Shown here: one piece after another, positions 23,166 through 46,932 of the stretch
How positions within the stretch are numbered: the first letter of the stretch is position 1
Layout of the letters: each line of letters starts with the position of its first letter
DNA from: Selaginella moellendorffii
Taxonomy: Eukaryota > Plantae > Lycopodiophyta
Direction of reading: 5' to 3'
Assembly (NCBI RefSeq): GCF_000143415.4
Contig: NW_003314273.1
Coordinates: 1,828,052 to 1,892,051, forward strand
Length of the DNA stretch: 64,000 nucleotides
Made by a program: the position numbers and the translations under genes
The notes under the pieces: generated by a model
Told to the model about the DNA's origin: nothing
The model's input: only the letters and a program-made list of their open reading frames with translations
The model's database searches: none

Positions 23166-24146
23166 GATCTCGATGATGGGCTTGGACAATTTTTGATACG
23201 CCTATCGATCGATCAGCTCGTCTTTGACAAGTATGGTGTCAATGAATCAGATGATCGCTTCCTAAGGAACTTCTCCCCTTGTTGTTTCTCCCTTCCTGTA
23301 GATTGCTGGTGGAATGCTGAGATTGTGGCAGAGGATTTATAGCAGTATCGCTTTCGAAGTTTTCCACCGGGTCAAAAGCATATACGAAATTCTCGCGTTG
23401 ATCTCTTCAATTTCTTCTCGAATGGGAAACATAATAGTCAAAGTTCAAACCACTAGGGTCAACTATACACAAGGAGGTATCGCGTCTTTGACCAGCGGAC
23501 TTTCACTGAAAAGCAACAAGTTGAGAGGTCGGGATCAGTGTTCTCCTCCTTTTCACCTGGTGATCAAAGGTTTAGATTGGAAGTCCTGATGCCAAGTCTC
23601 CTTGACGAACTGCCCAGAGTCTCAATCAAGGAAAGGCTCCCAAGAGCGGCGCCATCACACTCTGGGGCCACCACACTCTTGGAATCCCTGGTTGCTGCTG
23701 GCGATTGGGCACATGTGGACAATGAGATGGACACAGATGGATCCGACCTGGCAGGAAGAATGGATGCAAGGGCAAAAGAAGTGGTGGGGAAGAGGATTGG
23801 CTTGGGAATGGTGCAACAAGCAATGATCAAGATCTAATCACGGTGAGGGTTTTGACTCAGCCCGGGCTTATGCCCATTTTAGAACCGTTACAACGTTTCT
23901 AATATTTACTGGTTTGCTTAAAATGTAATTAGATATACTTATTAATATTAATATTTAATTAGATTAATCTTGTATTTATAATAATTTATGGTTTGCTTAA
24001 GCAAAAGTAAAATATATTTAATTCTACCAAATAATTGTTATTCATTTAGATTAATCTTGCATTTATAATTTCCAAACATGTTTATAATTTATAACTTTCC
24101 TAAACTCTTTATAGTTTATTTTTGGTTTGGTTAGGGATATACCACC

Positions 24147-24570
24147 CCTCAATCTCCACAGATCCAGCATCGAGCAGTAGTGTCTGGGCTGAGGCTTGAA
24201 TCCACAGTCGTTGCTCATTGAAACGAGAACTCGCATCCCTTGCCTGCGTGGCTGCAAGCAACCAAAGCACTCACATACGCAACTTGGTCGGGGATCATCT
24301 CACGAAAGTGGTCAATCGCTTGCGTCGGAATGACTACATGCGGAGATCACCGACATCCACGACACAACGTTCGATGGGAGAATGGTGCCAGGATGGAGTT
24401 CCAGGAGACGATGTTCCTCTCGGGCATGAGAGAGAGGATCTCCCAGATGCCCTTGTTGGGCATTCCCGCAAGGAGCGAGTTCAGCTCCATAGCTCGCACT
24501 CTGGGCTCTTGACGCCCGTGTTCCAGGTCACAAAGCTGGTGCGCGACAACGAGGCCCAAGATGCTGCCAA
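24147..24570 (-). pseudogene. PLS-PPR relic (other copies ~37950-38435, 41525-41950, 50400-50890, 63560-64000)
   Basis: MPERNIVSWNSIL, LVACSHAG and KPQPRHYCSMLDL fragments with frameshifts. Confidence 0.75.
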
Positions 24571-25478
24571 GAGCCCTGCATCCCAAGAAGTCCCGCCTAA
24601 TCCTCTGTAACAAACCCCTCCCCGCCACATCAGATTTCCCTGCCGAGTCATCCCTCCACGTGTTCTGTCTCACTTTATTCTACGGGCTTGTTATTGGCCG
24701 CTACAACTTTCAACAGTCATATCTCAAGTTCATGTCTTTTGCCTATAGATGAATGCTTACTTGAACAATGCCGCAATTGAAAACTGTCTTCTGGACGGAA
24801 ATGAACAAAGGAGACCTTCAGGTAGGCAGCTCACGTTTGTCCTGCCAGAACATTTTAAAACCCAAAGCAATAGCTGCAAGCAAAAGTTGCACAAGCTGCT
24901 GCTCTGTCTGCAATTTCGTCTGGAACTGGATCCGCCGCTGACATTTCTGCTGCTGCTGCCGCTGCCGTTGCGAGCTCCAAAAGGTTTGTGCATTTCCACG
25001 AAGCAACTCTTGTTTGTTCCTCACGACAGTGCACTAGGAAGTATATAGTTTGTTGAAATAAAGCTTGCAATACAGAGCAAATTCAAACCCAGAGCAAACA
25101 ACACAGCCCGCAACTGCCAGCTACTCCTGCTAGCTCACGAGGAATCGGCCAACCCCATGCATCAAAACATCACTCACTACAGCTGCATCATCAATCTCCT
25201 CAGCTGCACCGCACTCCCTTGTGGCCAAGGAGCTCAAGAAGGGAAACAATGCAAGCAAATTGTTTGTAGCAAAATGTAAATTAAGTTTTTCAAATCAAGA
25301 TATTTACAAGATTCAATCGAATGACCCAAACCAAAACTCTATAGGCCATTGCAAGCGTGCCACCTTTCAGATATACGTGCCAAACTGAGCTTGGTCCTAC
25401 TGATTAGCTTGAGGCCTCCGTAAAAGAATGAGTTTGTAAAAGTCCACCACCGTGATCGTGATGGAAGAAAGACGGGCT

Positions 25479-26804
25479 CTACTGCTTGGTGTCCTTAAAC
25501 CACCAGTTTGCTGGAACTCCAAGCTCTGCCTTGAGATAGTCCGATCTCTTGTTCACCAGTGCGATATCCCGGGTGCCCGAGATACTGAAGGGCTTGCTCG
25601 GCCCTTGGTAGCCATCAACCAGGTGAAGCAAGGCCTCCAAGTTGTGCAGATCGGTCAAGCCACCATCTTCCCTCAGAAACGGAGAGATGTCGCTGCTGAG
25701 CTCAAACTCGGTGCCAACATGGGTGTAGGCCCATGGGAACCTGTGGAAGATGAGCGAGATGATATCACAGCTGTCCTCGTTGACAATCACCCCTGGAACT
25801 TTGGGCACCAGGTCTGTGGCATTGCGTGTCTGGAGGACTTTGAGCCCGAGCTCGAGGCATCTGTTCTTGAAACCCCGGTTCCCAACTCGGGGTGCCGAGA
25901 ACGTGAAGACCGACACCGGGGTATTGCTCCCGGGCAGCCCAAGCTCTGTCACGTCGTAGGCGCTGAGGAGTGCAAGCGCGCCACCCAGGCTGTGGCCCGT
26001 GAACGTCATACTCAGCTGCTCGCCCTGGTAGAGCCCGACCAATCGCTTGATCTCCGAGTGGAGCTGCTGCCTCGCACTCATCCCGGCCTGATCGCCGGGG
26101 ACTGGAGACGTGTAGATGCTGAGAAATCCCGTCTCCACTTTCACGCCTTTGGTGTTGTGATCCGTGGGATCGAGCCCGGTGGGGCGGAGGAGATCCTTGA
26201 GGTTCTCGATCCACTCGAGCTGCGTCACCGTCCCGCGCCAGGCCACCACAATGTCGCGGCGTCCCAACCGTCGGATGGCCTCGTCCGACGTGGCAACCGC
26301 CACGAAGCCCATCCAGTTGGTGTCCGACGTCCACGAGTCGTCGCCGGGTTGGGCGTTGGAATTGGAGCGCTTGAAGAAGCTGGGCAAGCCCAGCTGCGAT
26401 GTTGCGTAGAGATAGGCCGTGATTTCGTATCCTGTGCTTGGGATTCCCACGGATTGGAGGAGCTCCTCCTTGGAGAACTTTGTGTCTCCACAGAATTCCG
26501 AGCCCTCGCTGTATTCGAAGCCGTCGTAGCAAGCCTGCGCGAATTCGCCGTATCGGATGATCTCCCGCCGGAGCCGCTCGTCGATGGAGGCGTTGGCGGG
26601 CGGGAGGAGCGGACTCCAGTGGCATGCATCCCGCCAGCCTGAGCTCAGCGCCAACTGCGTCTCCTCCAGCTCCACAACGCGCGCGCCATGACCATCTCCT
26701 TCAGATCTCTCCAACGTTCTTCTCTTGAATGAGAATGACAATGAATCTCCTTCTCTCTCCAACGGCCTTCTCTTGAATGACAGTGACAATGAAACTCGTT
26801 CCAT
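25479..26804 (-). CDS. Phospholipase A1, DAD1-like, copy 2
   Basis: Intact ORF, near identical to copy 1, GHSLG motif present. Confidence 0.93.
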   Translation of the reverse strand: MERVSLSLSFKRRPLEREGDSLSFSFKRRTLERSEGDGHGARVVELEETQLALSSGWRDACHWSPLLPPANASIDERLRREIIRYGEFAQACYDGFEYSEGSEFCGDTKFSKEELLQSVGIPSTGYEITAYLYATSQLGLPSFFKRSNSNAQPGDDSWTSDTNWMGFVAVATSDEAIRRLGRRDIVVAWRGTVTQLEWIENLKDLLRPTGLDPTDHNTKGVKVETGFLSIYTSPVPGDQAGMSARQQLHSEIKRLVGLYQGEQLSMTFTGHSLGGALALLSAYDVTELGLPGSNTPVSVFTFSAPRVGNRGFKNRCLELGLKVLQTRNATDLVPKVPGVIVNEDSCDIISLIFHRFPWAYTHVGTEFELSSDISPFLREDGGLTDLHNLEALLHLVDGYQGPSKPFSISGTRDIALVNKRSDYLKAELGVPANWWFKDTKQ

Positions 26805-29800
26805 GATCTCGATGCTCGCTCTGATGGGCTTGGACAATTGTTGATAAGCCTATCGATCGATCAGCTCGTCCTTGGCGAGTATGGTGTCAATGAATCAGAT
26901 GATCGCTTCGTAAAAAACTTCTCCTCTTCTTGGCTCTCCCTCCGTGTAAATTGCTGGTGGAATGCTGAGATTGTGGCAGAGGATTTATAGCAGTATCGCT
27001 TTTAAAGTTTGCCACCGGGTCAAAAGCATATACGAAATTCTCGTGTTGATCTCTTCAATTTCTTGTCGAATGGGAAGCATAATAGTCAAAGTTCAAACCA
27101 CCAGGGTCAGCCAAAGGAGGTATCGCGTCTTTGACCTGCAGACTTTCACTGAGCTTTCACTCTTGACTCTCATCCATTCAGTAAAGCAGTTGCGAGGTCG
27201 GGATCACTGTTCTCCTCACTTGGCGATCATAGGTGTAAATTGGAAGTCCTGACGCCAGATACTTGATCATCTCCTTGACAAACAGCCCAGAGTCTCAATC
27301 AAAGAAAGGCTCCCAAGAGCGGCCCATCACACTCTAGGGCCACCACACTCTGGGGCCACCACACTCTTGGAATCCTTGGCTGCTGCTGGTGATTATGGGT
27401 AGTCAACAATGAGCCTGTAGAACAAAGTGAGGTGGCACATGTGGTGCATCGTTAAGGGGCTTTGAAAGCCTCCCCCAATTTTAAAAATTAGATATACTTC
27501 TTAATATTAATATTTAATTATGTGAGTGCCTGGAATATGGAAAGGGAATACAGAAATGTGCATATCAATTAGCCCAAAAACCCTAGCTTATATACAGGAG
27601 CGAGTGGTTCGGATTGAAACCAATCCGACGGCTACTAAAATCCACTACGCTAATATTAGTATACGGCATCGTAGCTGTACACTTGGCCCTCACATCATCC
27701 CCTCCTCTCGGAATAATGGAAGGCCGTCAGGGTTCTTTTGTAGATGGGCCGGGATCTGGAGGAACGTCAGGAGGAGGCATCGGCGGATCTGTAGACGGTA
27801 TTAACTGCTCCTGATCCCTTTGTATGAAGTGTTTTAACCGCTGCACATGCACAATCTCTGGAGGATCGGCCTGCTGAACGTCATGCCGAACCTCATAAAC
27901 TTGCGGTCCAACTTGCCGCAACACCCGATACGGTCCTTTCCACTGCGCAAGGAGCCCCTTAGATAAACCACGTACTGTAAGATGGGGAAAACGGACTAAC
28001 ACCAAATCATCCACTTTGTACTCCGCAGGTGGACGATGATGGGAGTTGTAGCGCCGTTGTTGTCCCACTTGTACGCGGCCTAAATGTTCAACAGACTCTG
28101 CTCGGACAAGTGGAAGAATGCTTGTCAAATACTGATCCCATGACCTAGCATCAGGAGCTCGTGGCAATCGTGAAGGTAAACCCAGCTCTGTTGGTAATAT
28201 TGGATCATGACCATATAGAAGTTTATATGGTGAAGCACCAACAGAACTCTGCACCCCTGTGACATAGGCATACCGAAGAGACGGCAAATAACCATCCCAA
28301 TCCGAATGCTGAAAGTTCACATACTTCGCAATCATCCCTTTGAATGTCCGAACGAGCCGTTCCACCAGACCGTCTGATTGTGGATGATAAGCACTCGTAA
28401 AAGTGTGGCGTATCCCCAACCGAGATGTCAAAACATGAAATACCTCAGCCATAAATGCAGGACCATTATCCGAAAGAATCCGCTCTGGACAAGAATGCTG
28501 GAACACCACTCGATTGAGGAGGAAGTATCCAACAGCAGTTGCAGAGGCGCTAGCAAGAGCACCAACTTCCACCCAACGAGTCAAGTAGTCAGAAGCAATA
28601 ATAACATACTCATTGCCAGCAGTCGATCGTGGAAAAGGTCCCATAAGATCAAACGCCACCAACTCAAACAGACGGGAAACTGCAATTAACTCCAACCGTC
28701 CTTCCGCAGCACAAGGGGGAGTATTACGAGCTTGGCACCAAACGCAACTACGCACATACCGGATAATATCACGTCGCATCTCCGGCCAATAAAAAGACCT
28801 GCGCAGCTTCTCGGTGACACGACGGTGTCCCATATGCCCACCTAGAACAGGAGAATCATGGTAGGCATGGAGAAACCGCGGAATAAACACCAAAGGCACC
28901 ACCAACCGTAAATGATCATCAGGATCCGTCCCCACAAAATAAAAAAGGCCATCTTCAAGGCGATATTGAGAATGTAAATGCCGGAAAGGCAAGTCATCAG
29001 CAAGTGATGTAGGATTCTCAAACCCATCTCGAAGCCTTCGAATCCATGGCTCAATCTTTTGAGCCTCGCGAACCTCATCAAGAGAAGGTAGATCTTGCTT
29101 TGTGCCCTGTGGACACTGAACATCAAGGACAGCAACCGCCGACGGCACAGAATCCTCATCTAGAAAATCCACAGACGCTGGAACAACAGGTTCGTTAGAA
29201 ACATGAGAAGTGAGTGGAGAAGGAAGAGGAGCTCGAGAAAGGGCATCAGCATCAGCCATAGAACTCCCTGGGCGATGAACAACATCAAAATCATATATCT
29301 GAAGCTTCAAAGCCCATCAAGCCGTACGACCAACCAGGTTCTTCCGCTTCAATAATGAAGTAACAGCAGCATGGTCACCTTCAAGTAATGTCCGAGAACC
29401 ATGTAGATATGCATGAAGTTTCTCGAAACCCCAGACTGCTGCTAAACACTCCTTCTCCGTCGTGGAGTAGTTCATCTCCGCTAGTTGTAATGTACGGCTT
29501 ATGTATGCAATGGGATGGCGCTGACCAGGCACACTCGAGCTCTCTTGCATCAACACACCTCCAAGACCAATGTCAGAAGCATCCACGCGCAAAATAAAAG
29601 GTCGAGTGTAGTCAGGATATGCCAAAACCGGAGGAGTCGTCAATAGCTCTTTGAGATCCACGAACGCCCGCTCACAATCCGGAGACCAGATGAAAGATGA
29701 CGTTGATGACTTCAGCAACGCTCGCAATGGTGTAGTGCGATCGGAAAGATGATCCACAAAACGACCGAGATACTACACCTTACCCAAAAAGCGTTGCACA

Positions 29801-31151
29801 TCATTCACACATTTTGGAGTAGGGAACTTAAGAACAGCCACAAGTTTGTCAGGATCAACTTGCAAACCCTCACGAGAAATACGGTACCCAAGATAAGTTG
29901 TGTCCTTGGACCCAAACACGCACTTTGACCGCTTCAGCTTTAAACCAATATCACGTAGCCGATCCAACACTTTACAAACATCACGAACGTGCTCCTCTCA
30001 CGTCCCCTCCGAGTGGATCAAGACATCATTAATGAAGTCAGCAATCACTTTCGGCATATCGCAAAGAACCTCGTCCATCATCCGCTGGAAAGTTGCGGGA
30101 GCATTGTTCAAACCAAACGGCATCACCAAGAACTCGTACAAACCAAATGGTGTACGAAAAGCAGTCTTAGGAATATCTTCTTCGGCCATCGGTACTTGCC
30201 AATACCCAGAAGCAAGATCTAGCTTGGTGAACCAACGACTTCGCCCCAGACGATCTAAGAGATCAGCAGTGTGAGGAAGAGGATACACATCTGGGATCGT
30301 CATTTTGTTTAACGGGCGATAGTCGATGCAGAAACGAATACTCCCATCAGGCTTCATCACAAGATGAGGTTCACATGCCCAAGGACTCCGCGACTTCCGA
30401 ATAACACCCTTCTCCAACATTTCCTTGACGTTGGCTCGTAAAATCTTGATCTCCTTAGGTGACCGACGACGAACAGGAACCTTGATTGGACGAGCATCCC
30501 CGGTTGGAATCGGATGACGTGTGGCAATCTTGGCCCCAGACGATAGGTCAAATTCAAAGAGATCAGAATACTCCTTCATGAGCCGGTCAACTGCTGCAAC
30601 ACAAAGATCATCGGAGGGATCGGAAAAGGGAAAAGCAGAACAAGATGGAAACACAGAAGGAAAGAGTGGGGGAACAAAAGTAATGGAAGCAGATGTAAAA
30701 GTAGAGGGACGAAGAGGTATGGAAGTGAGAGGAATGGATGAAACATAAGGAAGTATGAGATAAGGGGGAGAAGCCTCAAAGTCACACTTGGCATGATTGT
30801 GTTGCAACCAATCCATACCAAGAATGAGGTCAAAAGCTTGACTCGGCACCACCCGCAACGACTGAAACTCAAGCTCGAGATCGCCCACACGCACAACCAG
30901 GTCCACCTCATCCCGTGCACATGCATGTGTACGGCCGTTGCCATAAAGAATGAAAACTAGTTCCACCGCACGACGCAAGTGTAAATGACAACGTGTGGTA
31001 ACAGGTCGAGCAATAGAAGATAAACTCGAACCTGTATCAACCAACACAGAGAGAATAATAGGAGACCTCTTGTTATAAAAACGAGCTTGGAAAGTAAACA
31101 CGGGATGAACCGATGCCGAGTGAACCCCTTGATGACACTCCCGAAAGAAAG

Positions 31152-31215
31152 ACGGAGGGGTCACTGATTTATTCGCGCAAGGTCCCTCCATTACTCGCGC
31201 GACTCCTCGTTTCCC
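31152..31215 (-). promoter_or_regulatory. Predicted -1 ribosomal frameshift signal (G GGA AAC plus H-type pseudoknot) at the gag-pol junction
   Basis: Heptamer at 31209-31215 is in the gag frame and pol is in the -1 frame; 6-nt spacer; stem 1 UCGCGCGAG/CUUGCGCGA, stem 2 AUGGAGGG/CCCUCCGU. Confidence 0.85.
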
Positions 31216-32328
31216 GGATGCATCTCGGCGTCCAGATCTTCCACTGCAACAACACCCACGGGACGTTGCTGATGCCAAGGTCTCCACCCAGGAAATGGAG
31301 GTCGCCAATCCGGAAAACGACGGCAACGCCGATAAGTATGACCAACTTCATCACACGCCCAACAGCGAACATCACGGCCACGACCACGTCCTCGCGCTTG
31401 TCCTTGGACTCGAGCAGCAGCAGCATCAACCTCCATTGGAACAGGACCATCACCCATAGGAAGGGGAGCGGAAGGATGTGCAGCGAGAAGTGGAAGAGGC
31501 GACATCTCATAATGTTGTGCCAAGCGAAGAGCATCGTCAAGGGTGGCAGGAGCAAGTGCATGCACAAGTCCAACAAGATCTTGACGAAGTGCTGGCCACA
31601 ACATTCCTAGCTTGATCCGCTCTGACATATTTGGCTCCGCACGAAGCAAAAGGCTTCGGAAACAAACGCCAAATTGCATCACTGACTCAGATGGCCCTTG
31701 GCGAAGACGATGCAATTGTTAGAAAGCATCATCACAATCATCGGCATAGCCGAAGGCGCATTTGAAGACGTCCAGGAGAACACTCCAATCCCCACGAGTG
31801 GCTGCGCTCAAACCATTGTACCACTGCAACGCCGTCCCTTGGAGACACGTGGGAAACTCACGCAAACGTCGAGCATCATCCCAAGAATGATATGTGGCAA
31901 TCACCGTGAAGTGATCGAACCAATGGTACACATCATCCCCAGGATTCCCGCGAAAGAACTCCGGCCGAACGCGAGGATTAGTACCAAGAGCAGGAGGAGT
32001 TGTACCACGTGCCGCGAACGCCGCCATCAACTGAGTTTGGTTGTTCAATTGCAAGCGCATAGCATCAAGCAATTGTACCAACTGCTGCTCTAGAGTCAAA
32101 GGAGGAGATTGCGGATCTGCCATGAAGATGAACGAAAAAGAAAGAGCAAAAGAAGAGAGATGACAAAAAGCTAGAAGGAAATGGTAGATCTAGACAACGC
32201 AAAAAGCTAGATCTAAACCAAAAGAAAGAACAAAAGAAAGGAAATGGAAAAAGCTAGATCTAAACGATGCAAAAGCTAGATCTAAACCAAAATCCCAAAT
32301 CCAAACACTCTTCAGGGACAATCAAAGG

Positions 32329-32346
32329 TGCCCTTCATCTCCACCA
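32329..32346 (-). promoter_or_regulatory. Primer-binding site, tRNA-Ala-like
   Basis: TGGTGGAGATGAAGGGCA, 1 nt from the 5' LTR; the first 11 nt are complementary to the recalled tRNA-Ala 3' end ...CAUCUCCACCA. Confidence 0.7.
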
Positions 32347-33558
32347 ATGTGAGTGCCTGGAATATGGAAAGGGAATACAGAAATGTGCATATCAATTAGC
32401 CCAAAAACCCTAGCTTATATACAGGAGCGAGTGGTCCGGATTGAAACCAATCCAACGGCTACTAAAATCCACTACGCTAATATTAGTATACGGCATCGTA
32501 GCTGTACACTTGGCCCTCACAATTATATTATTTTTATTTATATTAATTTATTGTTTGCATAAGCAAAAGTGAAATATATTAAGTTCTACCAAATAATTGT
32601 TATTCATTTAGATTAATCTTGTATTTAAACATATTTATAATCTATAACTTTCCTAAACACTTTCTAGTATATTTTTGGTTTGCTTAAGGTGGTAGTGGAT
32701 ATACCTAGAATATACTTGGATATTCTAGGATATTTACCATCTAACCATTACTCAATTACGCTTCAACCATTGTTTAACTGTAGGTACATGCATTCGATGG
32801 AGTATGTTGTGTCAGGAACAGCTGATGGAGTCGTTTGCATCAATACTACTGCTCACACTGGACAATTGGGTTTAGTACAGCAGCAAAAGTACTGGGAAGT
32901 ATCAATGTGTAACATATGAGTTTCTCATTTGACATTCCTTTACAGGGTAATGTTATAATTAAGAAAAATATTTATAATTTATAAACTTTCCTAAACATGT
33001 CTTAGTATATTCTAGTTTATTTTACCATTTAATGGTTAATATTCAATAAGATCAATCTTGTTTTTATAAATTATAAACATGTTTATAATTATAAACTTTC
33101 ATTTGATTAATTAGAAATATTAAGTAAACCTGCAATGCACAGCAAATTAGTATTTATTTTACCATCTAATTTGATATTTAATAAGATTAATTTTCATTTA
33201 TAAATTGTAATTTTTTTTATAATTATTGATCAAATGGATTATTCAATAATACTAAACAGGAATGAATTGTTTCACGTTTCTTGTCTTTTTCAATGATCTC
33301 CACCTTGCTCCATTTTAGAATGAGGTAGAGGGCTATCTCTCTTTCCTTTACTTTGAAGCTCATGGTGAATAGCTTTCTTCTCCATAGCTAGAAAAAGTAA
33401 TGAAGATCAAGCTCATTAGTGTCTAAACCCAGACACTGTTATTAGTGTTTGTAAGTCTTCATTCAAAAGTGGGATTAGGATTGTGATTATGACTTTTATC
33501 ATCATGGTCCTAAAGCTCATTCTGTGTGGGAGAGGACACACAAAAAGTCATGGAAACA

Positions 33559-33596
33559 TAGGGTTTAGGGTTTAAGGTTTAGGGTCTAAACCCTAG
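33559..33596. repeat. Short interstitial plant telomeric-like repeat (copy at 45938-45975)
   Basis: TAGGG TTTAGGG TTTAAGG TTTAGGG TC TAAACCCTAG. Confidence 0.75.
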
Positions 33597-34235
33597 ACAG
33601 TCCAAACGCTTTCCCTCTAGCTTGGGATGGAAAGTATATATGGACTTTTGAGCACTATTTGTAGGCTGACATTGAGAAATAAGTTACAAGACTAACACAC
33701 ATTTCGTCTTTGCAATGCTCATCTTAGTTTGGTTTTGATTGATTGATCCCACCAATGAGTTTTTATTTTATTTATTTATTTATTTCCTTTTTTTATCAGT
33801 TTCTGATGATAGAAACCGAAATGGAAGTAATTCTTATCACTACTTGCATTCCAGACCTTGCAACCTAAATCTTTTAGAACAAACTTTAAGGCTAGTACAT
33901 GCAAGAGTAATTACAAGCAATAGAAGAGAAATCAGGTCTTCAAACCATTTGAATCATAGTCTTTCAATAGATTGAGCATTTAAGATTCTCCTGGATATAA
34001 GATTGTAAAGAAAAATGTGAAATAAACTGATCTTGACTGGAAATCTTTGTTTGAGTTTTAAAGCATAATAATCTATTGCTCAAACGACTATTTTAGATAT
34101 GATAATGTTTTAATTATCCATGTTGGATTATTTTTATAACAAATATATGAAAAAACATTTGAAAGAAAACCAAGATATGAGTTTTTGAACCAAATTTACA
34201 AAGAAACATATAAATATACCCTTTGTGATTTTTTT

Positions 34236-34553
34236 GGTTTGCTTAAGCAAACCTATAGAGGGTAGTGGATAGACCTAGAATATGCTTGAATATTATAGGA
34301 TATTCTACCATCTAATGGTTGTTATTCATTTAGATTAATCTTGTATTTATAATTTATAAACTTTTTAAAACCCTTTCTAGTATATTCTTTTTATCCTATC
34401 ATCTAATGGTTGATATGTAGATTAATCTTTTGTTTATAAATTACAAACATGTTTATAATTATAAACTTATTTGATTAATTAGATTAATAAGTAAGAATAA
34501 CACTACTATTAAGCAAACCAAGCATTGTTACATACAATGTGTAGCAATTTATT
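34236..34553 (+). mobile_element. ~315-bp non-autonomous element with Helitron2/Helentron(HINE)-like ends
   Basis: 5' palindrome GGTTTGCTTAAGCAAACC after a T run; 3' subterminal IR TTAAGCAAACC (34509-34519), then an 11-bp stem-loop and Ts; empty poly-T site at ~60270. Confidence 0.7.
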
Positions 34554-36385
34554 TTAAGATTCAATTTCAAACTCATGTTATTGATGTGTTTATTTCAAGG
34601 GTTTATTTCTAAGTTATTTTTGAATTAAGCTTTTATGAATGTTTTCTTTGTGTTTATAAAAGTGTTTATATTGCACATTTTGATTAAACGAGAAGAACTT
34701 AGATGCTTACTAGCAGCAGCTAGCAGCTCATACAATACCTTGCCTAATGCATTGTAATCCAAAAAATGAAAATACCTCTAATGACTGTTGTAAATTCCAA
34801 TCTAAGTTGTGTTTTCTTACAAAGTCCCAACAGTGTTTCCGTTTGACACCTTTGTGTGAGCCCATTTGCCACACCACCATGCTGCGTGCGTGTTCTCTTC
34901 GACCAGTTCTCCTCCCAGCTTTCAGGTAAAGTCTAAAGCAGAAGGATGACTATAGACGTGAGAAACTTACTTGATCAAGTGTTCTCTTGCACTGAAGTAG
35001 TAGGCTCCTCATTATCACTATAGGAAATTTTTTTCAATGATGCTTGACGGGACCTATAATTAAGCATCTATGGTTGGAATAAGTGGATTATGAACTCGAC
35101 AAGTCATGTATCGCCACAAACGGTGCATGAAGGTCGCTAGAAACCAGTGGCTATTCAATTTTAAAATGGATCTGGGATTTCATGGATGTTGTTTTGATTC
35201 TTGTGATACCAACAAGCGGCAGCAACTTCACACAAGCAGAAACAACACTGCATCGCCCGCTAGACACCGATGTCGTATACGTGGTGAGCCAGGAGCTTGG
35301 CCATGGAAGATGTTTCTGTCATCTTATTGTGCTTGAGGAAGCGGGCCTTGAACTCATCATCATCAATGGGCGTTGCAGCCAGCCTTGCTGCAACCTGTTT
35401 TGGTGACAATCCGCGCTTGAGAAGGAAGCCCCGCCCCAATCTTGACATCCTCGCCATGTAACAGCCGCGCCTCCCTGGCTCAAAATCCATTGGCGTCACG
35501 TAGGACACCGTCGACCCCGGGTCGCCGAGCATGCCCAAGTAGTTGCTCGCTTCAAGCTGCATCTGGAGGGAGGGAGGCTTGCCCTGCAGCTGCCGCACTA
35601 TCTATAAACCATGCATGAGCAACAAATTTTTTTTTAAAAAATCAGAACGCTGAAGGCTCACTCACATGATCCGCTATTCGGAAGAGGTTCGACAGGAAGC
35701 TGTGAATAGCCGAGCACAGCCGCGCGTCTAACACGGCCATGTAGACGTTCTCCATGTAAGGTAAGGGCACACAGTAATAAGAGAAGCAAGCCTTCCGCCG
35801 TCGCCCAGATCTAGCAGGAGCTGCTCCAGCTCCACTGCACTTACAGTCCCTGTTGTTTCATTTCTTTTTGTCAATATTTTCATCTGGCTGCGAGGGAAAC
35901 TTCCATCGCTCGAGCGACTGATGAGTTGCAGAGCGGGATTTCATCAAGCAAGAAATCCAGCTTTGAGGACCTCACGTTTACAGCCTTTGGGAATTGAGCT
36001 TTATACCGTGCATATGGGTTTCTTTCCTCCAGGCCCTAAAGCAGCAAACTAAACTCGCATTACGTATTTCTTCACATACCACGCTTGGATTGTCTCGAAC
36101 AGAGCTCCACCCTCCACGGAGAAGGCGAACTGTGCCTGAAGGCAGAGATGACCCTCCGCAACTCGAGCGTGGCATCCACGGCTTCTCTCAAGCCCGGCGG
36201 CACGTCTGCAAGGTTATCCACTCCCTCCATAAGTTGGCCAACCCTGAAAAGGGACTGACGCCACGACCAAGTGCCCAGATTTCAGGTTCTTTCCAATGTG
36301 GAAGCTGTTTCCAAGAGCCATGGTTGCTCGAGAGCATTTTCCTGAGCGAAAGCCAGGAAGTTCCGGAAGCTTGCGGAGATGGTGC

Positions 36386-37316
36386 ACTCTTGCCGGGAGG
36401 CCCAATCCGTGGTTGCCAAGACCCTGGCGTGCGAGCTTTCACAACATGCTGGCTCCACGATTTGGCGATTGAATTTGGGAGGGGTTCCCTCCATACTGAA
36501 AAGTTTTTCTTCCAAGAATCTGGAAGCGAAGAGCCACGTCGATCTGATTGGAACTTTTTGCGGGATCCAATGTGTGAGCAGCAGCAGCAGCACAGTGGCG
36601 ATTGATGCGAGCGTCCACTCTGTTTCCATTTCTCTTGGAAGTTGAAAAAAGAATGAAACTTTGCAGACGGCCACATTGGTCTTCGCGAATCGCCGCTGCT
36701 CGTCTCAGTCTATGGCGAGGCCGAGGCCGCTGGATCGTTCTGTGCCCACTGCATTCATTTCTTCCAGTTCCTGGTGTGCGACGTGCTAAGATCAATGCCC
36801 GTTGGTTTGATGGCTCCCAGCTCTGGGCAAGGTGAGAGCTTCGATGCCACCCGCGTACCTGGTTGATCCTGAAGTCCCTTGAACCGTCAACCTTTGGCTC
36901 ACCTGGAGAAAGATATAGGAATGTGTTACTTACCGGGAAAGAACAACCAAGCCATAGCCACGAAGACTACGAACAAAAGAAGCAAAGAACTGAGAGAACA
37001 AGGAACGAAAGCTACTCACCACATCGAGCGGGACGAAGATGAACTGCGAGACGACCTAGGGGAGAAAGCCCGCAGCTCCATTCGCGATGGCGGCGGCGGC
37101 GGTGTCTGGAAAGTTGAGCTTGGAAGTGAGGTTGAGCCGCCATCTTGGTCGCTTCGAGAGTTGTCAAGAACAGCACTCAACTGGAAACAGTGCCGGCAAT
37201 CACGGTCCAAATCCCCGGTAGAGTCCTCTCACTCCATTGCTAAGAATCGATCTGAGCTTTCATATTGCTCGCCTCATTCTCGTCTTGATCGGGTAGAGCG
37301 CCGCCGACAAGCCCGA
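36386..37316. pseudogene. Collinear deletion-mosaic of the exostosin, SET and carrier genes (source 5560-8520), copy 1
   Basis: Successive matches to 5562-5597, 5626-5676, 5737-5875, 6113-6215, 6578-6641 and 8045-8519, in the same order and orientation. Confidence 0.9.
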
Positions 37317-39216
37317 TATGTTCTCTCGAGATTCTACTCACTGTCACAGTCGCACGACACCACCACTGGCGCCATCACGAGCCATGGTGACAGACAGGGA
37401 ACGACGAGGTCCTGCCAGAAAAGATCACCCATTAACGGAGGAAAGTGGAGAGAAATTTGGATCACATACTTGTGTTTTTTGTTTGCTCATTCCTGGCCTC
37501 CACGCAAAGCCAAATATATATGTCGATCCAGCTTAGGCACGCGGAGTGAAGTTCCACCGATTGGCACACCGAAGATGCTACGTTTGTCGTGTCCCAACCT
37601 CGGACGATCGTTCCAGCCTCGAGAAAGGAGCAAAAGCAATACAGACTGTTGCTCGAATATCTCTAACCAGCCCTAGAAACTCAACACAGTTAATCTAATA
37701 ATAAAATAATAAAATTGTGTTTTCGCCCATTCCAGCCTTGACAATTGCTTGTTTCACCCAGAACAATCCAGATCGGCAAATGTAGACATGAGATTTTATC
37801 AGAAGCTTGCGATCCTGTACCTACACGCGACCCAAAGGAAAAGATGTTCACATTCAGGATCTTACAATCTGAAGCAATTGCTAATCAAGTTGGCACAGCC
37901 TTTTCCGCAACAAGAATGCTTCCCAACACTCCGTAGTCCGACGAGCTCAAACAATGCCGACTCCTTTGCGAGCCGGCGAGCAGCGCCATCCGGGAGCTCT
38001 CTCGGCTGGCTCAATCTCCACAGATCCAGCATCGAGCAGTAGTGTCTGGGCTGAGGCTTGAATCCACAGTCGTTGCTCATCGAAACGAGAACTCGCGTCC
38101 CTTGCCTGCGTGGCTGCAAGCAACCAAAGCACTCACATACGCAACTTGGTCGGGGATCATCTCACGAAAGTGGTCAATCGCTTGCGTCGGAATGGCTACA
38201 CGCGGAAATCACCGACGTCCACGACACAACGTTCGATGGGAGAACGGCGCCAGGATGGAGTTCCAGGAGACGATGTCCCTCTCGGGCATGAGAGCGAGGA
38301 TCTCCCAGATGCCCTTGTTGGGCATTCCCGCAAGGAGCGAGTTCAGCTCCATAGCTCGCACTCGGGCTCTTGACGCCCGTGTTCCAGGTCACAAAGCTGG
38401 CGCGCGACAACGAGGCCCAAGATGCTGCCAAGAGCCCGAGGTCTCCTCCATAAGCTGCTTCTTAGTTTTTAGTTTTAAGAAAATGGAGGCCTCGGGCTTA
38501 CTTGAACAATGCCGAAGAAGTACGATTGAAAACTGTCTTCTGGACGGAAATGAACAAAGGAGACTTTCAGGTAGGCAGCTCACGTTTGTCCTGCCAGCAC
38601 ATTTTAAAACTCGCAGCAAAAGCTGCACAAGCTGCTGTTCTGTCTGCAATTTCGTCTGGAACTGGATCCGCCGCTGACATCTCTGCTGCTGCTGCCGTTG
38701 CGAGCTCCAAAAGGTTTGTGCATTTCCACGAAGCAACTCTTGTTTGTTCCTCACGCCATTGCACTAGGAAGTATTGAAATAAGGCTTGCAATACAGAGCA
38801 AATTCAAAACCAAAGCAAACAACACAGTCCGCAACTGCCAGATACTCCTGCTATCATCGAGGAATCGGCCAACCCCATGCATCCAAACATCGCTCACTAC
38901 AGCTACATCATCGATCTCCTCAGCTGCACCGCACACCCTTGTGGCCAAGGAGCTCAAGAAGGGAAACAATGCAAGCAAATGGTTTGTGTCATGGAATAGC
39001 AAAATGTAAAGTAAGTTTTCAAATCAAGATATTTACAAGATTCGGTCGAATGAACTTCAAGGAAGCTTCTCGAACCAAAACTCTATAAGCCATTGCAAGC
39101 GTGCCACCTTTCAGATATACGTGCCAAACAGAGCTTACTGATCAGCGTGAGGCCTCCGTAAAAGAATGAGTTTGTAAAAGTCCACCACCGTGATCGTGAT
39201 GGAAGAAAGACGGACT

Positions 39217-40542
39217 CTACTGCTTGGTGTCCTTAAACCACCAGTTTCCTGGAACTCCAAGCTCTGCCTTGAGATAGTCCGATCTCTTGTTCACCAGTGC
39301 GATATCCCGGGTGCCCGAGACACTGAAGGGCTTGCTCGGCCCTTGGTAGCCATCAACCAGGTGAAGCAAGGCCTCCAAGTTGTGCAGATCGGTCAAGCCA
39401 CCATCTTCCCTCAGAAACGGAGAGATGTCGCTGCTGAGCTCAAACTCGGTGCCAACATGGGTGTAGGCCCATGGGAACCTGTGGAAGATGAGCGAGATGA
39501 TATCACAGCTGTCCTCGTTGACAATCACCCCTGGAACTTTGGGCACCAGGTCTGCGGCATTGCGTGTCTGGAGGACTTTGAGCCCGAGCTCGAGGCACCT
39601 GTTCTTGAAACCCCGGTTCCCAACTCGGGGTGCCGAGAACGTGAAGACGGACACCGGGGTATTGCTCCCGGGCAGCCCAAGCTCTGTCACGTCGTAGGCG
39701 CTGAGGAGTGCAAGCGCGCCACCCAGGCTGTGGCCCGTGAACGTCATACTCAGCTGCTCGCCCTGGTAGAGCCCGACCAATCGCTTGATCTCCGAGTGGA
39801 GCTGCTGCCTCGCGCTCATCCCGGCCTGATCGCCGGGGACTGGAGACGTGTAGATGCTGAGAAATCCGGTCTCCACTTTCACGCCTTTGGTGTTGTGATC
39901 CGTGGGGTCGAGCCCGGTGGGGCGGAGGAGATCCTTGAGGTTCTCGATCCACTCGAGTTGCGTCACCGTCCCGCGCCAGGCCACCACAATGTCGCGGCGT
40001 CCCAACCGTCGGATGGCCTCGTCCGACGTGGCAACCGCCACGAAGCCCATCCAGTTGGTGTCCGACGTCCACGAGTCGTCGCCGGGTTGGGCGTTGGAAT
40101 TGGAGCGCTTGAAGAAGCTGGGCAAGCCCAGCTGCGATGTTGCGTAGAGATAGGCCGTGATTTCGTATCCCGTGCTTGGGAGTCCCACGGATTGGAGGAG
40201 CTCCTCCTTAGAGAACTTTGTGTCTCCACAGAATTCCGAGCCCTCGCTGTATTCGAAGCCGTCGTAGCAAGCCTGGGCGAATTCGCCGTATCGGATGATC
40301 TCCCGCCGGAGCCGCTCGTCGATGGAGGCGTTGGCGGGCGGGAGGAGCGGACTCCAGTGGCATGCATCCCGCCAGCCTGAGCTCAGCGCCAACTGCGTCT
40401 CCTCCAGCTCCACAACGCGCGCGCCATGACCATCTCCTTCAGATCTCTCCAACGTTCTTCTCTTGAATGAGAATGACAACGAATCTCCTTCTCTCTCCAA
40501 CGTCCTTCTCTTGAATGACAGTGACAATGAAACTCGTTCCAT
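39217..40542 (-). CDS. Phospholipase A1, DAD1-like, copy 3
   Basis: Intact ORF with GHSLG, Asp and His motifs. Confidence 0.93.
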   Translation of the reverse strand: MERVSLSLSFKRRTLEREGDSLSFSFKRRTLERSEGDGHGARVVELEETQLALSSGWRDACHWSPLLPPANASIDERLRREIIRYGEFAQACYDGFEYSEGSEFCGDTKFSKEELLQSVGLPSTGYEITAYLYATSQLGLPSFFKRSNSNAQPGDDSWTSDTNWMGFVAVATSDEAIRRLGRRDIVVAWRGTVTQLEWIENLKDLLRPTGLDPTDHNTKGVKVETGFLSIYTSPVPGDQAGMSARQQLHSEIKRLVGLYQGEQLSMTFTGHSLGGALALLSAYDVTELGLPGSNTPVSVFTFSAPRVGNRGFKNRCLELGLKVLQTRNAADLVPKVPGVIVNEDSCDIISLIFHRFPWAYTHVGTEFELSSDISPFLREDGGLTDLHNLEALLHLVDGYQGPSKPFSVSGTRDIALVNKRSDYLKAELGVPGNWWFKDTKQ

Positions 40543-42856
40543 GATCTCGATGCTCGCTCTGATGGGCTTGGACAATTGTTGATACGCCTATCGATCGATC
40601 AGCTCGTCCTTGACGAGTATGGTGTCAATGAATCAGATGATCGCTTCCTTCTCCCCTTGTTGTTTCTCCCTTCGTGTAGATTGCTGGTGGAATGCTGAGA
40701 TTGCGGCAGAGGATTTATAGCAGTATCGCTTTCGAAGTTTGCCACCGGGTCAAAAGCATATACGAAATTCTCGCGTTGATCTCTTCAATTTCTTCTCGAA
40801 TGGGAAACATAATAGTCAAAGTTCAAACCACTAGGGTCAACTATACACAAGGAGGTATCGCGTCTTTGACCAGCGGACTTTCACTGAAAAGCAACAAGTT
40901 GAGAGGTCGGGATCAGTGTTCTCCTCCTTTTCACCTGGTGATCAAAGGTTTAGATTGGAAGTCCTGATGCCAAGTCTCCTTGACGAACTGCCCAGAGTCT
41001 CAATCAAGGAAAGGCTCCCAAGAGCGGCGCCATCACACTCTGGGGCCACCACACTCTTGGAATCCCTGGTTGCTGCTGGCGATTGGGCACATGTGGACAA
41101 TGAGATGGACACAGATGGATCCGACCTGGCAGGAAGAATGGATGCAAGGGCAAAAGAAGTGGTGGGGAAGAGGATTGGCTTGGGAATGGTGCAACAAGCA
41201 ATGATCAAGATCTAATCACGGTGAGGGTTTTGACTCAGCCCGGGCTTATGCCCATTTTAGAACCGTTACAACGTTTCTAATATTTACTGGTTTGCTTAAA
41301 ATGTAATTAGATATACTTATTAATATTAATATTTAATTAGATTAATCTTGTATTTATAATAATTTATGGTTTGCTTAAGCAAAAGTAAAATATATTTAAT
41401 TCTACCAAATAATTGTTATTCATTTAGATTAATCTTGCATTTATAATTTCCAAACATGTTTATAATTTATAACTTTCCTAAACTCTTTATAGTTTATTTT
41501 TGGTTTGGTTAGGGATATACCACCCCTCAATCTCCACAGATCCAGCATCGAGCAGTAGTGTCTGGGCTGAGGCTTGAATCCACAGTCGTTGCTCATTGAA
41601 ACGAGAACTCGCATCCCTTGCCTGCGTGGCTGCAAGCAACCAAAGCACTCACATACGCAACTTGGTCGGGGATCATCTCACGAAAGTGGTCAATCGCTTG
41701 CGTCGGAATGACTACATGCGGAGATCACCGACATCCACGACACAACGTTCGATGGGAGAATGGTGCCAGGATGGAGTTCCAGGAGACGATGTTCCTCTCG
41801 GGCATGAGAGAGAGGATCTCCCAGATGCCCTTGTTGGGCATTCCCGCAAGGAGCGAGTTCAGCTCCATAGCTCGCACTCTGGGCTCTTGACGCCCGTGTT
41901 CCAGGTCACAAAGCTGGTGCGCGACAACGAGGCCCAAGATGCTGCCAAGAGCCCTGCATCCCAAGAAGTCCCGCCTAATCCTTTGTAACAAACCCCTCCC
42001 CGCCACATCAGATTTCCCTGCCGAGTCATCCCTCCACGTGTTCTGTCTCACTTTATTCTACGGGCTTGTTATTGGCCGCTACAACTTTCAACAGTCATAT
42101 CTCAAGTTCATGTCTTTTGCCTATAGATGAATGCTTACTTGAACAATGCCGCAATTGAAAACTGTCTTCTGGACGGAAATGAACAAAGGAGACCTTCAGG
42201 TAGGCAGCTCACGTTTGTCCTGCCAGAACATTTTAAAACTCAAAGCAATAGCTGCAAGCAAAAGTTGCACAAGCTGCTGCTCTGTCTGCAATTTCGTCTG
42301 GAACTGGATCCGCCGCTGACATTTCTGCTGCTGCTGCCGCTGCCGTTGCGAGCTCCAAAAGGTTTGTGCATTTCCACGAAGCAACTCTTGTTTGTTCCTC
42401 ACGACAGTGCACTAGGAAGTATATAGTTTGTTGAAATAAAGCTTGCAATACAGAGCAAATTCAAACCCAGAGCAAACAACACAGCCCGCAACTGCCAGCT
42501 ACTCCTGCTAGCTCACGAGGAATCGGCCAACCCCATGCATCAAAACATCACTCACTACAGCTGCATCATCAATCTCCTCAGCTGCACCGCACTCCCTTGT
42601 GGCCAAGGAGCTCAAGAAGGGAAACAATGCAAGCAAATTGTTTGTAGCAAAATGTAAACTAAATTTTTCAAATCAAGATATTTACAAGATTCAATCGAAT
42701 GACCCAAACCAAAACTCTATAGGCCATTGCAAGCGTGCCACCTTTCAGATATACGTGCCAAACTGAGCTTGGTCCTACTGATTAGCTTGAGGCCTCCGTA
42801 AAAGAATGAGTTTGTAAAAGTCCACCACCGTGATCGTGATGGAAGAAAGACAGGCT

Positions 42857-44182
42857 CTACTGCTTGGTGTCCTTAAACCACCAGTTTGCTGGAACTCCAA
42901 GCTCTGCCTTGAGATAGTCGGATCTCTTGTTCACCAGTGCGATATCCCGGGTGCCCGAGATACTGAAGGGCTTGCTCGGCCCTTGGTAGCCATCAACCAG
43001 GTGAAGCAAGGCCTCCAAGTTGTGCAGATCGGTCAAGCCACCATCTTCCCTCAGAAACGGAGAGATGTCGCTGCTGAGCTCAAACTCGGTGCCAACATGG
43101 GTGTAGGCCCATGGGAACCTGTGGAAGATGAGCGAGATGATATCACAGCTGTCCTCGTTGACAATCACCCCTGGAACTTTGGGCACCAGGTCTGTGGCAT
43201 TGCGTGTCTGGAGGACTTTGAGCCCGAGCTCGAGGCATCTGTTCTTGAAACCCCGGTTCCCAACTCGGGGTGCCGAGAACGTGAAGACCGACACCGGGGT
43301 ATTGCTCCCGGGCAGCCCAAGCTCTGTCACGTCGTAGGCGCTGAGGAGTGCAAGCGCGCCACCCAGGCTGTGGCCCGTGAACGTCATACTCAGCTGCTCG
43401 CCCTGGTAGAGCCCGACCAATCGCTTGATCTCCGAGTGGAGCTGCTGCCTCGCGCTCATCCCGGCCTGATCGCCGGGGACTGGAGACGTGTAGATGCTGA
43501 GAAATCCCGTCTCCACTTTCACGCCTTTGGTGTTGTGATCCGTGGGATCGAGCCCGGTGGGGCGGAGGAGATCCTTGAGGTTCTCGATCCACTCGAGCTG
43601 CGTCACCGTCCCGCGCCAGGCCACCACAATGTCGCGGCGTCCCAACCGTCGGATGGCCTCGTCCGACGTGGCAACCGCCACGAAGCCCATCCAGTTGGTG
43701 TCCGCCGTCCACGAGTCGTCGCCGGGTTGGGCGTTGGAATTGGAGCGCTTGAAGAAGCTGGGCAAGCCCAGCTGCGATGTTGCGTAGAGATAGGCCGTTA
43801 TTTCGTATCCCGTGCTTGGGAGTCCCACGGATTGGAGGAGCTCCTCCTTGGAGAACTTTGTGTCTCCACAGAATTCCGAGCCCTCGCTGTATTCGAAGCC
43901 GTCGTAGCAAGCCTGGGCGAATTCGCCGTATCGGATGATCTCCCGCCGGAGCCGCTCGTCGATGGAGGCGTTGGCGGGCGGGAGGAGCGGACTCCAGTGG
44001 CATGCATCCCGCCAGCCTGAGCTCAGCGCCAACTGCGTCTCCTCCAGCTCCACAACGCGCGCGCCATGACCATCTCCTTCAGATCTCTCCAACGTTCTTC
44101 TCTGGAATGAGAATGACAACGAATCTCCTTCTCTCTCCAACGTCCTTCTCTTGAATGACAGTGACAATGAAACTCGTTCCAT
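42857..44182 (-). CDS. Phospholipase A1, DAD1-like, copy 4
   Basis: Intact ORF with GHSLG, Asp and His motifs. Confidence 0.93.
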   Translation of the reverse strand: MERVSLSLSFKRRTLEREGDSLSFSFQRRTLERSEGDGHGARVVELEETQLALSSGWRDACHWSPLLPPANASIDERLRREIIRYGEFAQACYDGFEYSEGSEFCGDTKFSKEELLQSVGLPSTGYEITAYLYATSQLGLPSFFKRSNSNAQPGDDSWTADTNWMGFVAVATSDEAIRRLGRRDIVVAWRGTVTQLEWIENLKDLLRPTGLDPTDHNTKGVKVETGFLSIYTSPVPGDQAGMSARQQLHSEIKRLVGLYQGEQLSMTFTGHSLGGALALLSAYDVTELGLPGSNTPVSVFTFSAPRVGNRGFKNRCLELGLKVLQTRNATDLVPKVPGVIVNEDSCDIISLIFHRFPWAYTHVGTEFELSSDISPFLREDGGLTDLHNLEALLHLVDGYQGPSKPFSISGTRDIALVNKRSDYLKAELGVPANWWFKDTKQ

Positions 44183-46614
44183 GATCTCGATGCTCGCTCT
44201 GATGGGCTTGGACAATTGTTGATAAGCCTATCGATCGATCAGCTCGTCCTTGGCGAGTATGGTGTCAATGAATCAGATGATCGCTTCGTAAAAAACTTCT
44301 CCTCTTCTTGGCTCTCCCTCCGTGTAAATTGCTGGTGGAATGCTGAGATTGTGGCAGAGGATTTATAGCAGTATCGCTTTCAAAGTTTGCCACCGGGTCA
44401 AAAGCATATACGAAATTCTCGCGTTGATCTCTTCAATTTCTTCTCGAATGGGAAGCATAATAGTCAAAGTTCAAACCACCAGGGTCAGCCAAAGGAGGTA
44501 TCGCGTCTTTGACCTGCAGACTTTCACTGAGCTTTCACTCTTGACTCTCATCCGTTCAGTAAAGCAGTTGCGAGGTCGGGATCACTGTTCTCCTCACTTG
44601 GCGATCATAGTTGTAAATTGGAAGTCCTGACGCCAGATACTTGATCATCTCCTTGACAAACAGCCCAGAGTCTCAATCAAAGAAAGGCTCCCAAGAGCGG
44701 CCCATCACACTCTAGGGCCACCACACTCTGGGGCCACCACACTCTTGGAATCCTTGGCTGCTGCTGGTGATTATGGGTAGTCAACAATGAGCCTGTAGAA
44801 CAAAGTGAGGTGGCACATGTGGTGCATCGTTAAGGGGCTTTGACCCAGTAAGCCTCCCCCAATTTTAAAAATTAGATATACTTCTTAATATTAATATTTA
44901 ATTATATTATTTTTATTTATATTAATTTATTGTTTGCATAAGCAAAAGTGAAATATATTAAGTTCTACCAAATAATTGTTATTTATTTAGATTAATCTTG
45001 TATTTAAACATATTTATAATCTATAACTTTCCTAAACACTTTCTAGTATATTTTTGGTTTGCTTAAGGTGGTAGTGGATATACCTAGAATATACTTGGAT
45101 ATTCTAGGATATTTACCATCTAACCATTACTCAATTACGCTTCAACCATTGTTTAACTGTAGGTACATGCATTCGATGGAGTATGTTGTGTCAGGAACAG
45201 CTGATGGAGTCGTTTGCATCAATACTACTGCTCACACTGGACAATTGGGTTTAGTACAGCAGCAAAAGTACTGGGAAGTATCAATGTGTAACATATGAGT
45301 TTCTCATTTGACATTCCTTTACAGGGTAATGTTATAATTAAGAAAAATATTTATAATTTATAAACTTTCCTAAACATGTCTTAGTATATTCTAGTTTATT
45401 TTACCATTTAATGGTTAATATTCAATAAGATCAATCTTGTTTTTATAAATTATAAACATGTTTATAATTATAAACTTTCATTTGATTAATTAGAAATATT
45501 AAGTAAACCTGCAATGCACAGCAAATTAGTATTTATTTTACCATCTAATTTGATATTTAATAAGATTAATTTTCATTTATAAATTGTAATTTTTTTTATA
45601 ATTATTGATCAAATGGATTATTCAATAATACTAAACAGGAATGAATTGTTTCACGTTTCTTGTCTTTTTCAATGATCTCCACCTTGCTCCATTTTAGAAT
45701 GAGGTAGAGGGCTATCTCTCTTTCCTTTACTTTGAAGCTCATGGTGAATAGCTTTCTTCTCCATAGCTAGAAAAAGTAATGAAGATCAAGCTCATTAGTG
45801 TCTAAACCCAGACACTGTTATTAGTGTTTGTAAGTCTTCATTCAAAAGTGGGATTAGGATTGTGATTATGACTTTTATCATCATGGTCCTAAAGCTCATT
45901 CTGTGTGGGAGAGGACACACAAAAAGTCATGGAAACATAGGGTTTAGGGTTTAAGGTTTAGGGTCTAAACCCTAGACAGTCCAAACGCTTTCCCTCTAGC
46001 TTGGGATGGAAAGTATATATGGACTTTTGAGCACTATTTGTAGGCTGACATTGAGAAATAAGTTACAAGACTAACACACATTTCGTCTTTGCAATGCTCA
46101 TCTTAGTTTGGTTTTGATTGATTGATCCCACCAATGAGTTTTTATTTTATTTATTTATTTATTTCCTTTTTTTATCAGTTTCTGATGATAGAAACCGAAA
46201 TGGAAGTAATTCTTATCACTACTTGCATTCCAGACCTTGCAACCTAAATCTTTTAGAACAAACTTTAAGGCTAGTACATGCAAGAGTAATTACAAGCAAT
46301 AGAAGAGAAATCAGGTCTTCAAACCATTTGAATCATAGTCTTTCAATAGATTGAGCATTTAAGATTCTCCTGGATATAAGATTGTAAAGAAAAATGTGAA
46401 ATAAACTGATCTTGACTGGAAATCTTTGTTTGAGTTTTAAAGCATAATAATCTATTGCTCAAACGACTATTTTAGATATGATAATGTTTTAATTATCCAT
46501 GTTGGATTATTTTTATAACAAATATATGAAAAAACATTTGAAAGAAAACCAAGATATGAGTTTTTGAACCAAATTTACAAAGAAACATATAAATATAACC
46601 TTTGTGATTTTTTT

Positions 46615-46932
46615 GGTTTGCTTAAGCAAACCTATAGAGGGTAGTGGATAGACCTAGAATATGCTTGAATATTATAGGATATTCTACCATCTAATGGTTG
46701 TTATTCATTTAGATTAATCTTGTATTTATAATTTATAAACTTTTTAAAACCCTTTCTAGTATATTCTTTTTATCCTATCATCTAATGGTTGATATGTAGA
46801 TTAATCTTTTGTTTATAAATTACAAACATGTTTATAATTATAAACTTATTTGATTAATTAGATTAATAAGTAAGAATAACACTACTATTAAGCAAACTAA
46901 GCATTGTTACATACAATGTGTAGCAATTTATT
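46615..46932 (+). mobile_element. Duplicate of the HINE-like element at 34236
   Basis: Same termini and same flanks, within the segmental duplication. Confidence 0.7.

Follow-up and report, generated by a model that had tools for sequence, protein, structure and literature searches.

A probable non-autonomous Helitron2/Helentron-like transposon in a lipase-array spacer of Selaginella moellendorffii

The stretch of Selaginella moellendorffii DNA analysed here (the window, 64 kb) contains intronless class-3 lipase genes arranged in tandem, along with gypsy elements, one PPR gene and one GT47 gene. The closest database relatives of the lipases are S. moellendorffii phospholipase A1-Igamma1-like proteins, with identities of 98% and 84%. 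When the window is compared with itself, positions 21104-27521 and 38516-44905 prove to be 98% identical, 32521-37650 and 44900-50025 form a segmental duplication at 97.4% identity, and the unit that we call D (~56288-64000) emerges as an older paralogue, 85-95% identical. The spacers of units A, B and D house the short repeats that are our subject, which we designate copies a to d. Other repeats share this DNA. A 5-kb gypsy-type element (27521-32521), with protease, reverse transcriptase and integrase open reading frames and an ATTA duplicated at its edges, lies inside copy d; it is missing from the 98% duplicate (~44900), so its insertion postdates the segmental duplication. At 11671-16841 there is a diverged relative in inverted orientation. 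Interstitial plant telomere-type repeats (TAGGGTT x 3.9, 33559-33589) occupy the spacer between the repeat cluster described below and copy a.

Copy a (34236-34555; this copy and all its features are given on the plus strand) is 320 bp of non-coding DNA between lipase genes, with a GC content of 24% and a longest stop-free stretch of 28 codons; Pfam searches with the small open reading frames around its insertion gave no match. A run of seven Ts (34229-34235) adjoins its 5′ end and represents target sequence; the run is found at the unoccupied site in unit D as well. The 5′ terminus itself is a perfect 18-bp palindrome, GGTTTGCTTAAGCAAACC (34236-34253), whose first 11 nt (34236-34246) serve as the 5′ member of an asymmetric terminal inverted repeat. 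The 3′ member, TTAAGCAAACC (34509-34519), is the exact complement of 34236-34246 and is subterminal: beyond its last base, 29 nt remain up to the T tail and 36 nt up to the end of the segment. Three nucleotides further on begins a weak hairpin with a 6-bp stem, CATTGT-TACAT-ACAATG (34523-34539), and the segment closes with the T-rich tail TTATTTT (34549-34555), which either forms the 3′ end of the element or is the second half of a duplicated T-rich target. Half of the element is taken up by a pair of AT-rich subrepeats (34301-34371 and 34392-34459, spanning 34301-34459) that are 80% identical over 71 bp and that TRF did not call as a tandem array; the second contains a 16-bp palindrome, GTTTATAATTATAAAC (34451-34466). 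An earlier note on this DNA had described a T run, an 18-bp palindrome, a subterminal inverted repeat, a stem-loop and terminal Ts at this segment, and all of them are present. Its details call for some revision: the inserted segment runs 2 nt beyond the proposed end at 34553, the subrepeats have a period of ~87-91 bp instead of ~75 bp, and the string given as the stem-loop does exist (34524-34548), but its 11-bp stem needs two mismatches and is no better than that of shuffled sequence.

The terminal motifs are heavily over-represented in the window. With up to three mismatches, GGTTTGCTTAAGCAAACC has 6 matches where 0.03 would be expected, and the TTAAGCAAACC 11-mer with up to one mismatch has 19 where 1.3 would be expected. 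All 11 of the perfect palindromes of at least 16 bp in the window fall within the Helitron2-like repeat family, and they consist solely of the 5′ palindrome and of palindromes in the second subrepeat (33069-33096, 34451-34466 and 59276-59303, duplicated at 45448-45475 and 46830-46845). That subrepeat houses an overlapping pair of perfect ones, AATTATAAACATGTTTATAATT (22 bp) and the 16-bp palindrome named above. In folding calculations on copy a, the hairpin of the 5′ palindrome has a predicted dG of -6.4 kcal/mol (z = -3.5 relative to shuffles), and the 3′ hairpin is no more stable than shuffled sequence (z = -0.7). Folded as single-stranded DNA, the entire element reaches a dG of -37.8 kcal/mol, compared with -21.8 +/- 3.6 for shuffles (z = -4.5), and this predicted structure has the two terminal repeats base-paired to each other, with the 3′ hairpin coming immediately afterwards.

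The boundaries of copy a are defined by a paralogous site in unit D, which lacks the element and reads ctttgtgatttttttaaaagat (60261-60282, plus strand). In a global alignment of units B and D, the gap starts exactly at GGTTTGC, base 1 of the palindrome, and ends after ...GCAATTTATTTT, at which point D has two extra As. The gap thus coincides exactly with the segment, and the earlier observation that unit D is without it stands. Over the 85 bp upstream of copy a, B and D are nearly identical, with 48/50 matches in the nearest 50 bp; downstream, the flanks match at 35/50 positions, a low figure that we attribute to later indels between these old paralogues. A strict empty-site rule (Thomas et al. 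2014, PMC4067079) asks that a chimeric query of 100 bp match at 90% or more, and the joined flanks match the D site at 81/100, short of that threshold. Because T-rich direct repeats stand at both ends of copy a, the D state could reflect deletion of the element instead of a site that was never filled. Even with a deletion in D, copy a stays a discrete unit with ends defined by its family.

The direct repeats at the ends bear on the mode of insertion. Copy a is flanked by ATTTTTTT / ATTTATTTT, imperfect T-rich repeats of 8-9 bp, and copy b, the second full copy, by TAGTATATTTTT / TAGTATTTATTTT, likewise imperfect and T-rich, of 12-13 bp. These flanks could be duplicated target, the element's own tail or, at copy b, a doublet native to the host subrepeat. 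The last possibility arises because the doublet TAGTATATTC-TAGTTTATTC is also found inside copy b with its halves uninterrupted (59211-59230), so that the apparent target-site duplication (TSD) of copy b may be native subrepeat sequence. Taken at face value, the flanks of both copies would suit a cut-and-paste miniature or an otherwise unclassified DNA element that makes variable T-rich TSDs of 8-13 bp, with its resemblance to Helitron2 a coincidence. We regard that explanation as quite improbable. The ends of the segment are not inverted repeats of one another, the right repeat lying 29-36 nt inside; the bases just outside the two repeats do not match (TTTT versus AAGC or TGCA); the doublet of copy b exists without an insertion between its halves; and Helitron2 itself has been reported with variable TSDs (PMC3627910). 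Either outcome, TSD or no TSD, is compatible with the literature on Helitron2/Helentron (HLE2) elements.

Two more specific DNA-transposon assignments were rejected. A miniature element (MITE) of a terminal-inverted-repeat superfamily needs inverted repeats flush with its boundaries and a TSD of fixed length; the earlier note had named terminal, MITE-style repeats as the finding that would overturn its own assignment, and the right repeat was instead found to be subterminal. A piggyBac-like parse, which reads the cluster as TTAA-flanked GCAAA..GGTTTGC units, leaves copy a with a TTAA-bounded interior that has no inverted ends.

Further copies of the element allow its boundaries to be examined at other sites. 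The copy at 46615-46934 (plus strand) is the same insertion as 34236-34555; it belongs to the 97.4% segmental duplicate, differs at 1 of 318 positions and is therefore not independent of copy a, which is found only in B units. Copy b is best seen in unit D (59066-59367, plus strand), where it matches the 5′ palindrome at 17/18 positions and carries a 3′ repeat, TTAAGTAAACC (59327-59337, plus strand), and a hairpin, CTGCA-ATG-TGCAG (59337-59349, plus strand), followed by the tail TAGTATTTCTTTT. This hairpin has a 5-bp stem that differs from that of copy a and occupies the same place, and its stability is no better than that of shuffled sequence. The same old insertion of copy b is present in unit B (32677-33160, with a duplicate at 45056-45539; plus strand), where part of the 5′ palindrome is lost; the B and D versions are 95.6% identical over the 3′ 181 nt. 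Copy b of unit B also contains a foreign, GC-richer piece of 221 bp (32745-32965, duplicate 45124-45344) that replaces ~27 bp and for which we found neither a source within the window nor a Pfam match. The piece resembles either filler DNA or a scrap of a gene with intron-like edges. As copy b of unit D is without it, it arrived in place after the split of B and D and was not captured during transposition.

Copies c and d are older layers of the same cluster. In unit D, a 134-bp 5′ part of copy c (58932-59065, plus strand) is separated from its remainder (~59368-59450) by copy b. Once joined, the two pieces follow copy a colinearly, with 87% of the aligned columns identical, which places copy b as a nested insertion at a T run in copy c and provides a second, independent test of the element boundaries. 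Copy c in turn sits inside copy d, of which unit D retains a 78-bp 5′ stub (58854-58931, plus strand). The paralogues of copy c lie at 23990-24123, 41368-41501, 32553-32676 and 44932-45055; those of copy d lie at 23911-23989 and 41289-41367, with decayed versions at 44870-44931 and 27486-27520, the latter interrupted by the gypsy element. The base preceding the 5′ end is a T in each of the four kinds of copy, and the two full copies, a and b, stand directly after T7 and T5, respectively. The homology between copies a and b is bounded by the same two boundaries as the gap between B and D, and both copies have CAATGTG[C/T]AGCAA[A]T 3′ of the right repeat. Related copies had been listed in the earlier note, and those exist; its list fell short of the 5′ ends at 23990, 41368, 58854 and 58932 and of the decayed ones at 32553 and 44932.

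In a sensitive search of the window, the family is confined to two loci ~1 kb apart within one duplicated intergenic region, at which about four insertion events are visible in the 64 kb. The 'family' of the earlier note is seen at just these two loci, and no dispersed copy was seen in the window. A scan of metagenome contigs with the 18-mer returned 12 loci that have only the 18-19-mer in common; we take them to be chance matches. The d/c/b cluster occurs, variously decayed, downstream of every lipase copy and thus predates the array.

This confinement would suit a different explanation, namely that the segment is a local, non-mobile repeat: an AT-rich, palindrome-rich piece of spacer duplicated by slippage or unequal exchange, and deleted in unit D between T-rich direct repeats. 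Every copy lies in one type of spacer of one tandem array, copy a is bounded by T-rich direct repeats and the alignment of the B and D spacers contains several other indels, of 12-18 bp. Moreover, unequal exchange has clearly altered the layout of the array. Within unit A, the spacer at 24124-24150 (duplicate 41502-41528) begins with the first ~25 nt of copy b and then reaches a junction at ~24147, beyond which comes sequence whose other occurrences, with matches at 38010, 50443 and 63638, are ~5 kb farther along. The spacer thus jumps in the middle of copy b, which puts one unequal-exchange or deletion breakpoint of the array inside the Helitron2-like element. Nevertheless, several observations make a non-mobile origin unlikely. 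First, the gap between B and D matches the 5′ palindrome and the end of the a/b homology to the base. Second, copies a and b are only 84% identical and their 3′ tails differ, whereas copy b has kept 95.6% identity between B and D, which argues that copy a is not a recent local copy of b. Finally, matched 5′ and 3′ repeats and a whole-element fold at z = -4.5 would be unexpected in a random duplicated piece.

We favor the reading that copy a (34236-34555) represents a short rolling-circle transposon, non-autonomous and without coding sequence, from the Helitron2/Helentron (HLE2) branch; it would be a plant counterpart of the animal HINE/DINE-1 elements. We put the probability of this reading at roughly two in three. 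In Helitron2, the 5′ repeat lies 0-2 bp from the end and pairs with downstream bases to form a 5′ hairpin, the 3′ repeat closely precedes a hairpin and stands ~20-30 bp from the end, and the 5′ side shows a preference for T, with insertion after TTTT without a TSD and, in some families, variable TSDs of 7-19 bp (Bao & Jurka 2013, Mob DNA 4:12, PMC3627910). Copy a has a 5′ repeat within this 0-2 bp range that forms its own hairpin, and its matching subterminal 3′ repeat stands just upstream of a hairpin, albeit a weak one (z = -0.7). It therefore resembles Helitron-1N1_CRe of Chlamydomonas and Helitron-5_SMo in having a terminal 5′ repeat in a hairpin and a subterminal 3′ repeat followed by a hairpin, and resembles Helitron2 in being short, non-coding and placed directly after TTTT; the likeness to Helitron-5_SMo is drawn from its published description. 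There are also differences. In copy a the 3′ repeat stops 29-36 nt short of the end, against ~20-30 in Helitron2, and T-rich repeats possibly flank full-length copies here, whereas in Chlamydomonas Helitron2 the TSDs occur mostly with 5′-truncated copies (PMC3627910). The end structure, the subrepeats and the T-run site accordingly fit the Helitron2/Helentron-like label given in the earlier note; the accompanying claim of no TSD fares less well, given the T-rich flanking repeats.

The comparison with HINEs is similarly close without being exact. HINEs have subterminal inverted repeats of 12-15 bp that are often palindromic, a 3′ palindrome of 5-10 bp, a 3′ repeat 38-60 bp from the end, central repeats that make up as much as about half of the element, T-rich targets and terminal Ts that vary in number (Thomas et al. 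2014, Mob DNA 5:18, PMC4067079). As in HINE/DINE-1 elements of mites, mosquitoes, Drosophila and oyster (Thomas et al. 2014; Sci Rep 10:15107), the target of copy a is T-rich, the number of its terminal Ts is uncertain and its ends are defined by a paralogous empty site. By contrast, its repeat measures 11 bp (13 with two flanking Ts) and not 12-15 bp, it has no microsatellite block, its subrepeats are two in number and do not form an array, and its host is a plant. In land plants, HELIANO detected HLE2 in 6/8 classes, with 13 HLE2-positive plants (Li et al. 2024, NAR 52:e79). Copy a shares short terminal inverted repeats and T/T insertion sites with these elements, for example HelenSM92 of Sphagnum, but the HELIANO families are autonomous and defined by their RepHel genes, and here there is a non-coding derivative alone.

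If the Helitron2/HINE reading is correct, a plausible history of the locus can be outlined, in which we infer the enzyme, the single-strand route and any duplication of target bases from the form of the ends. A Rep-helicase supplied in trans by an autonomous Helentron/Helitron2 elsewhere in the S. moellendorffii genome would recognize both ends, the 5′ end as GGTTTGCTTAA folded into its own hairpin and the 3′ signal as the complementary TTAAGCAAACC followed by the small hairpin. The enzyme would nick the DNA and peel off one strand starting at the 5′ end, and transfer would stop upon pairing of the 3′ repeat with the 5′ repeat, a pairing that has been proposed as the signal ending rolling-circle transfer (Bao & Jurka, PMC3627910). 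A T run would then receive the freed single strand. Copies d, c and b would have arrived in that order, nesting one in another downstream of an ancestral lipase gene, and the cluster would have been copied with each gene duplication. Later, after divergence of B and D and before the 97% duplication that yielded the copy at 46615, copy a would have inserted after TTTTTTT in the unit B spacer.

Read from the minus strand, the same sequence invites comparison with a SINE-like retroposon that ends in ...GCAAACC plus an A run, has variable A-rich flanks and uses a TTTT/AAAA site resembling that of a LINE endonuclease. The D site is indeed TTTTTTT/AAAA, and on that strand copies a and b have A-rich flanking repeats, of unequal length in the two. 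However, ARAGORN and Rfam searches returned no tRNA-like or other RNA family match at E <= 1, an internal TTTT on the minus strand would stop polymerase III, the empty site already has the A run, and the 11-bp inverted repeats and the palindromes would be left unexplained. We judge this origin very improbable. A tRNA-derived SINE in particular was rejected, on the blank ARAGORN and Rfam results and on the A/T run already in place at the empty site. Also rejected was a canonical Helitron (HLE1), which has a 5′ TC, a 3′ CTRR after a hairpin, an A/T insertion site and no inverted repeats: copy a has ends of GG... / ...GCAATTTATTTT, a T run as its target and an 11-bp inverted repeat.

Elements of this class, their occurrence in S. 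moellendorffii and their occurrence in land plants are already published. Helitron-5_SMo of this species was among the named examples when Helitron2 was defined in 2013 (PMC3627910). In view of this and of the HELIANO survey, the statement in the earlier note that such elements are best known outside land plants was too strong. Our literature search found no paper pairing Helentron or Helitron2 by name with Selaginella and none containing the terminal motif strings, which suggests that this particular non-coding family may be undescribed outside Repbase. A more ambitious proposal is that the copies represent an uncatalogued lycophyte HINE-like family that was active after one round of duplication in the lipase array and before another, prefers T runs between its own subrepeats and duplicates a variable T-rich target even for full-length copies. 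We consider that proposal unlikely as a whole. If true, TSDs around full-length copies would depart from the rule drawn from Chlamydomonas Helitron2 of no TSD for full-length copies.

More broadly, copy a and its relatives offer a compact land-plant example of Helitron2/HLE2 ends with boundaries placed at base level. Standard Helitron finders, tuned to TC...CTRR, miss such elements, and the example can be used in repeat annotation of Selaginella and for tools directed at non-autonomous HLE2 elements. For the locus itself, copy a and the nested cluster date steps in the growth of the phospholipase A1 gene array.
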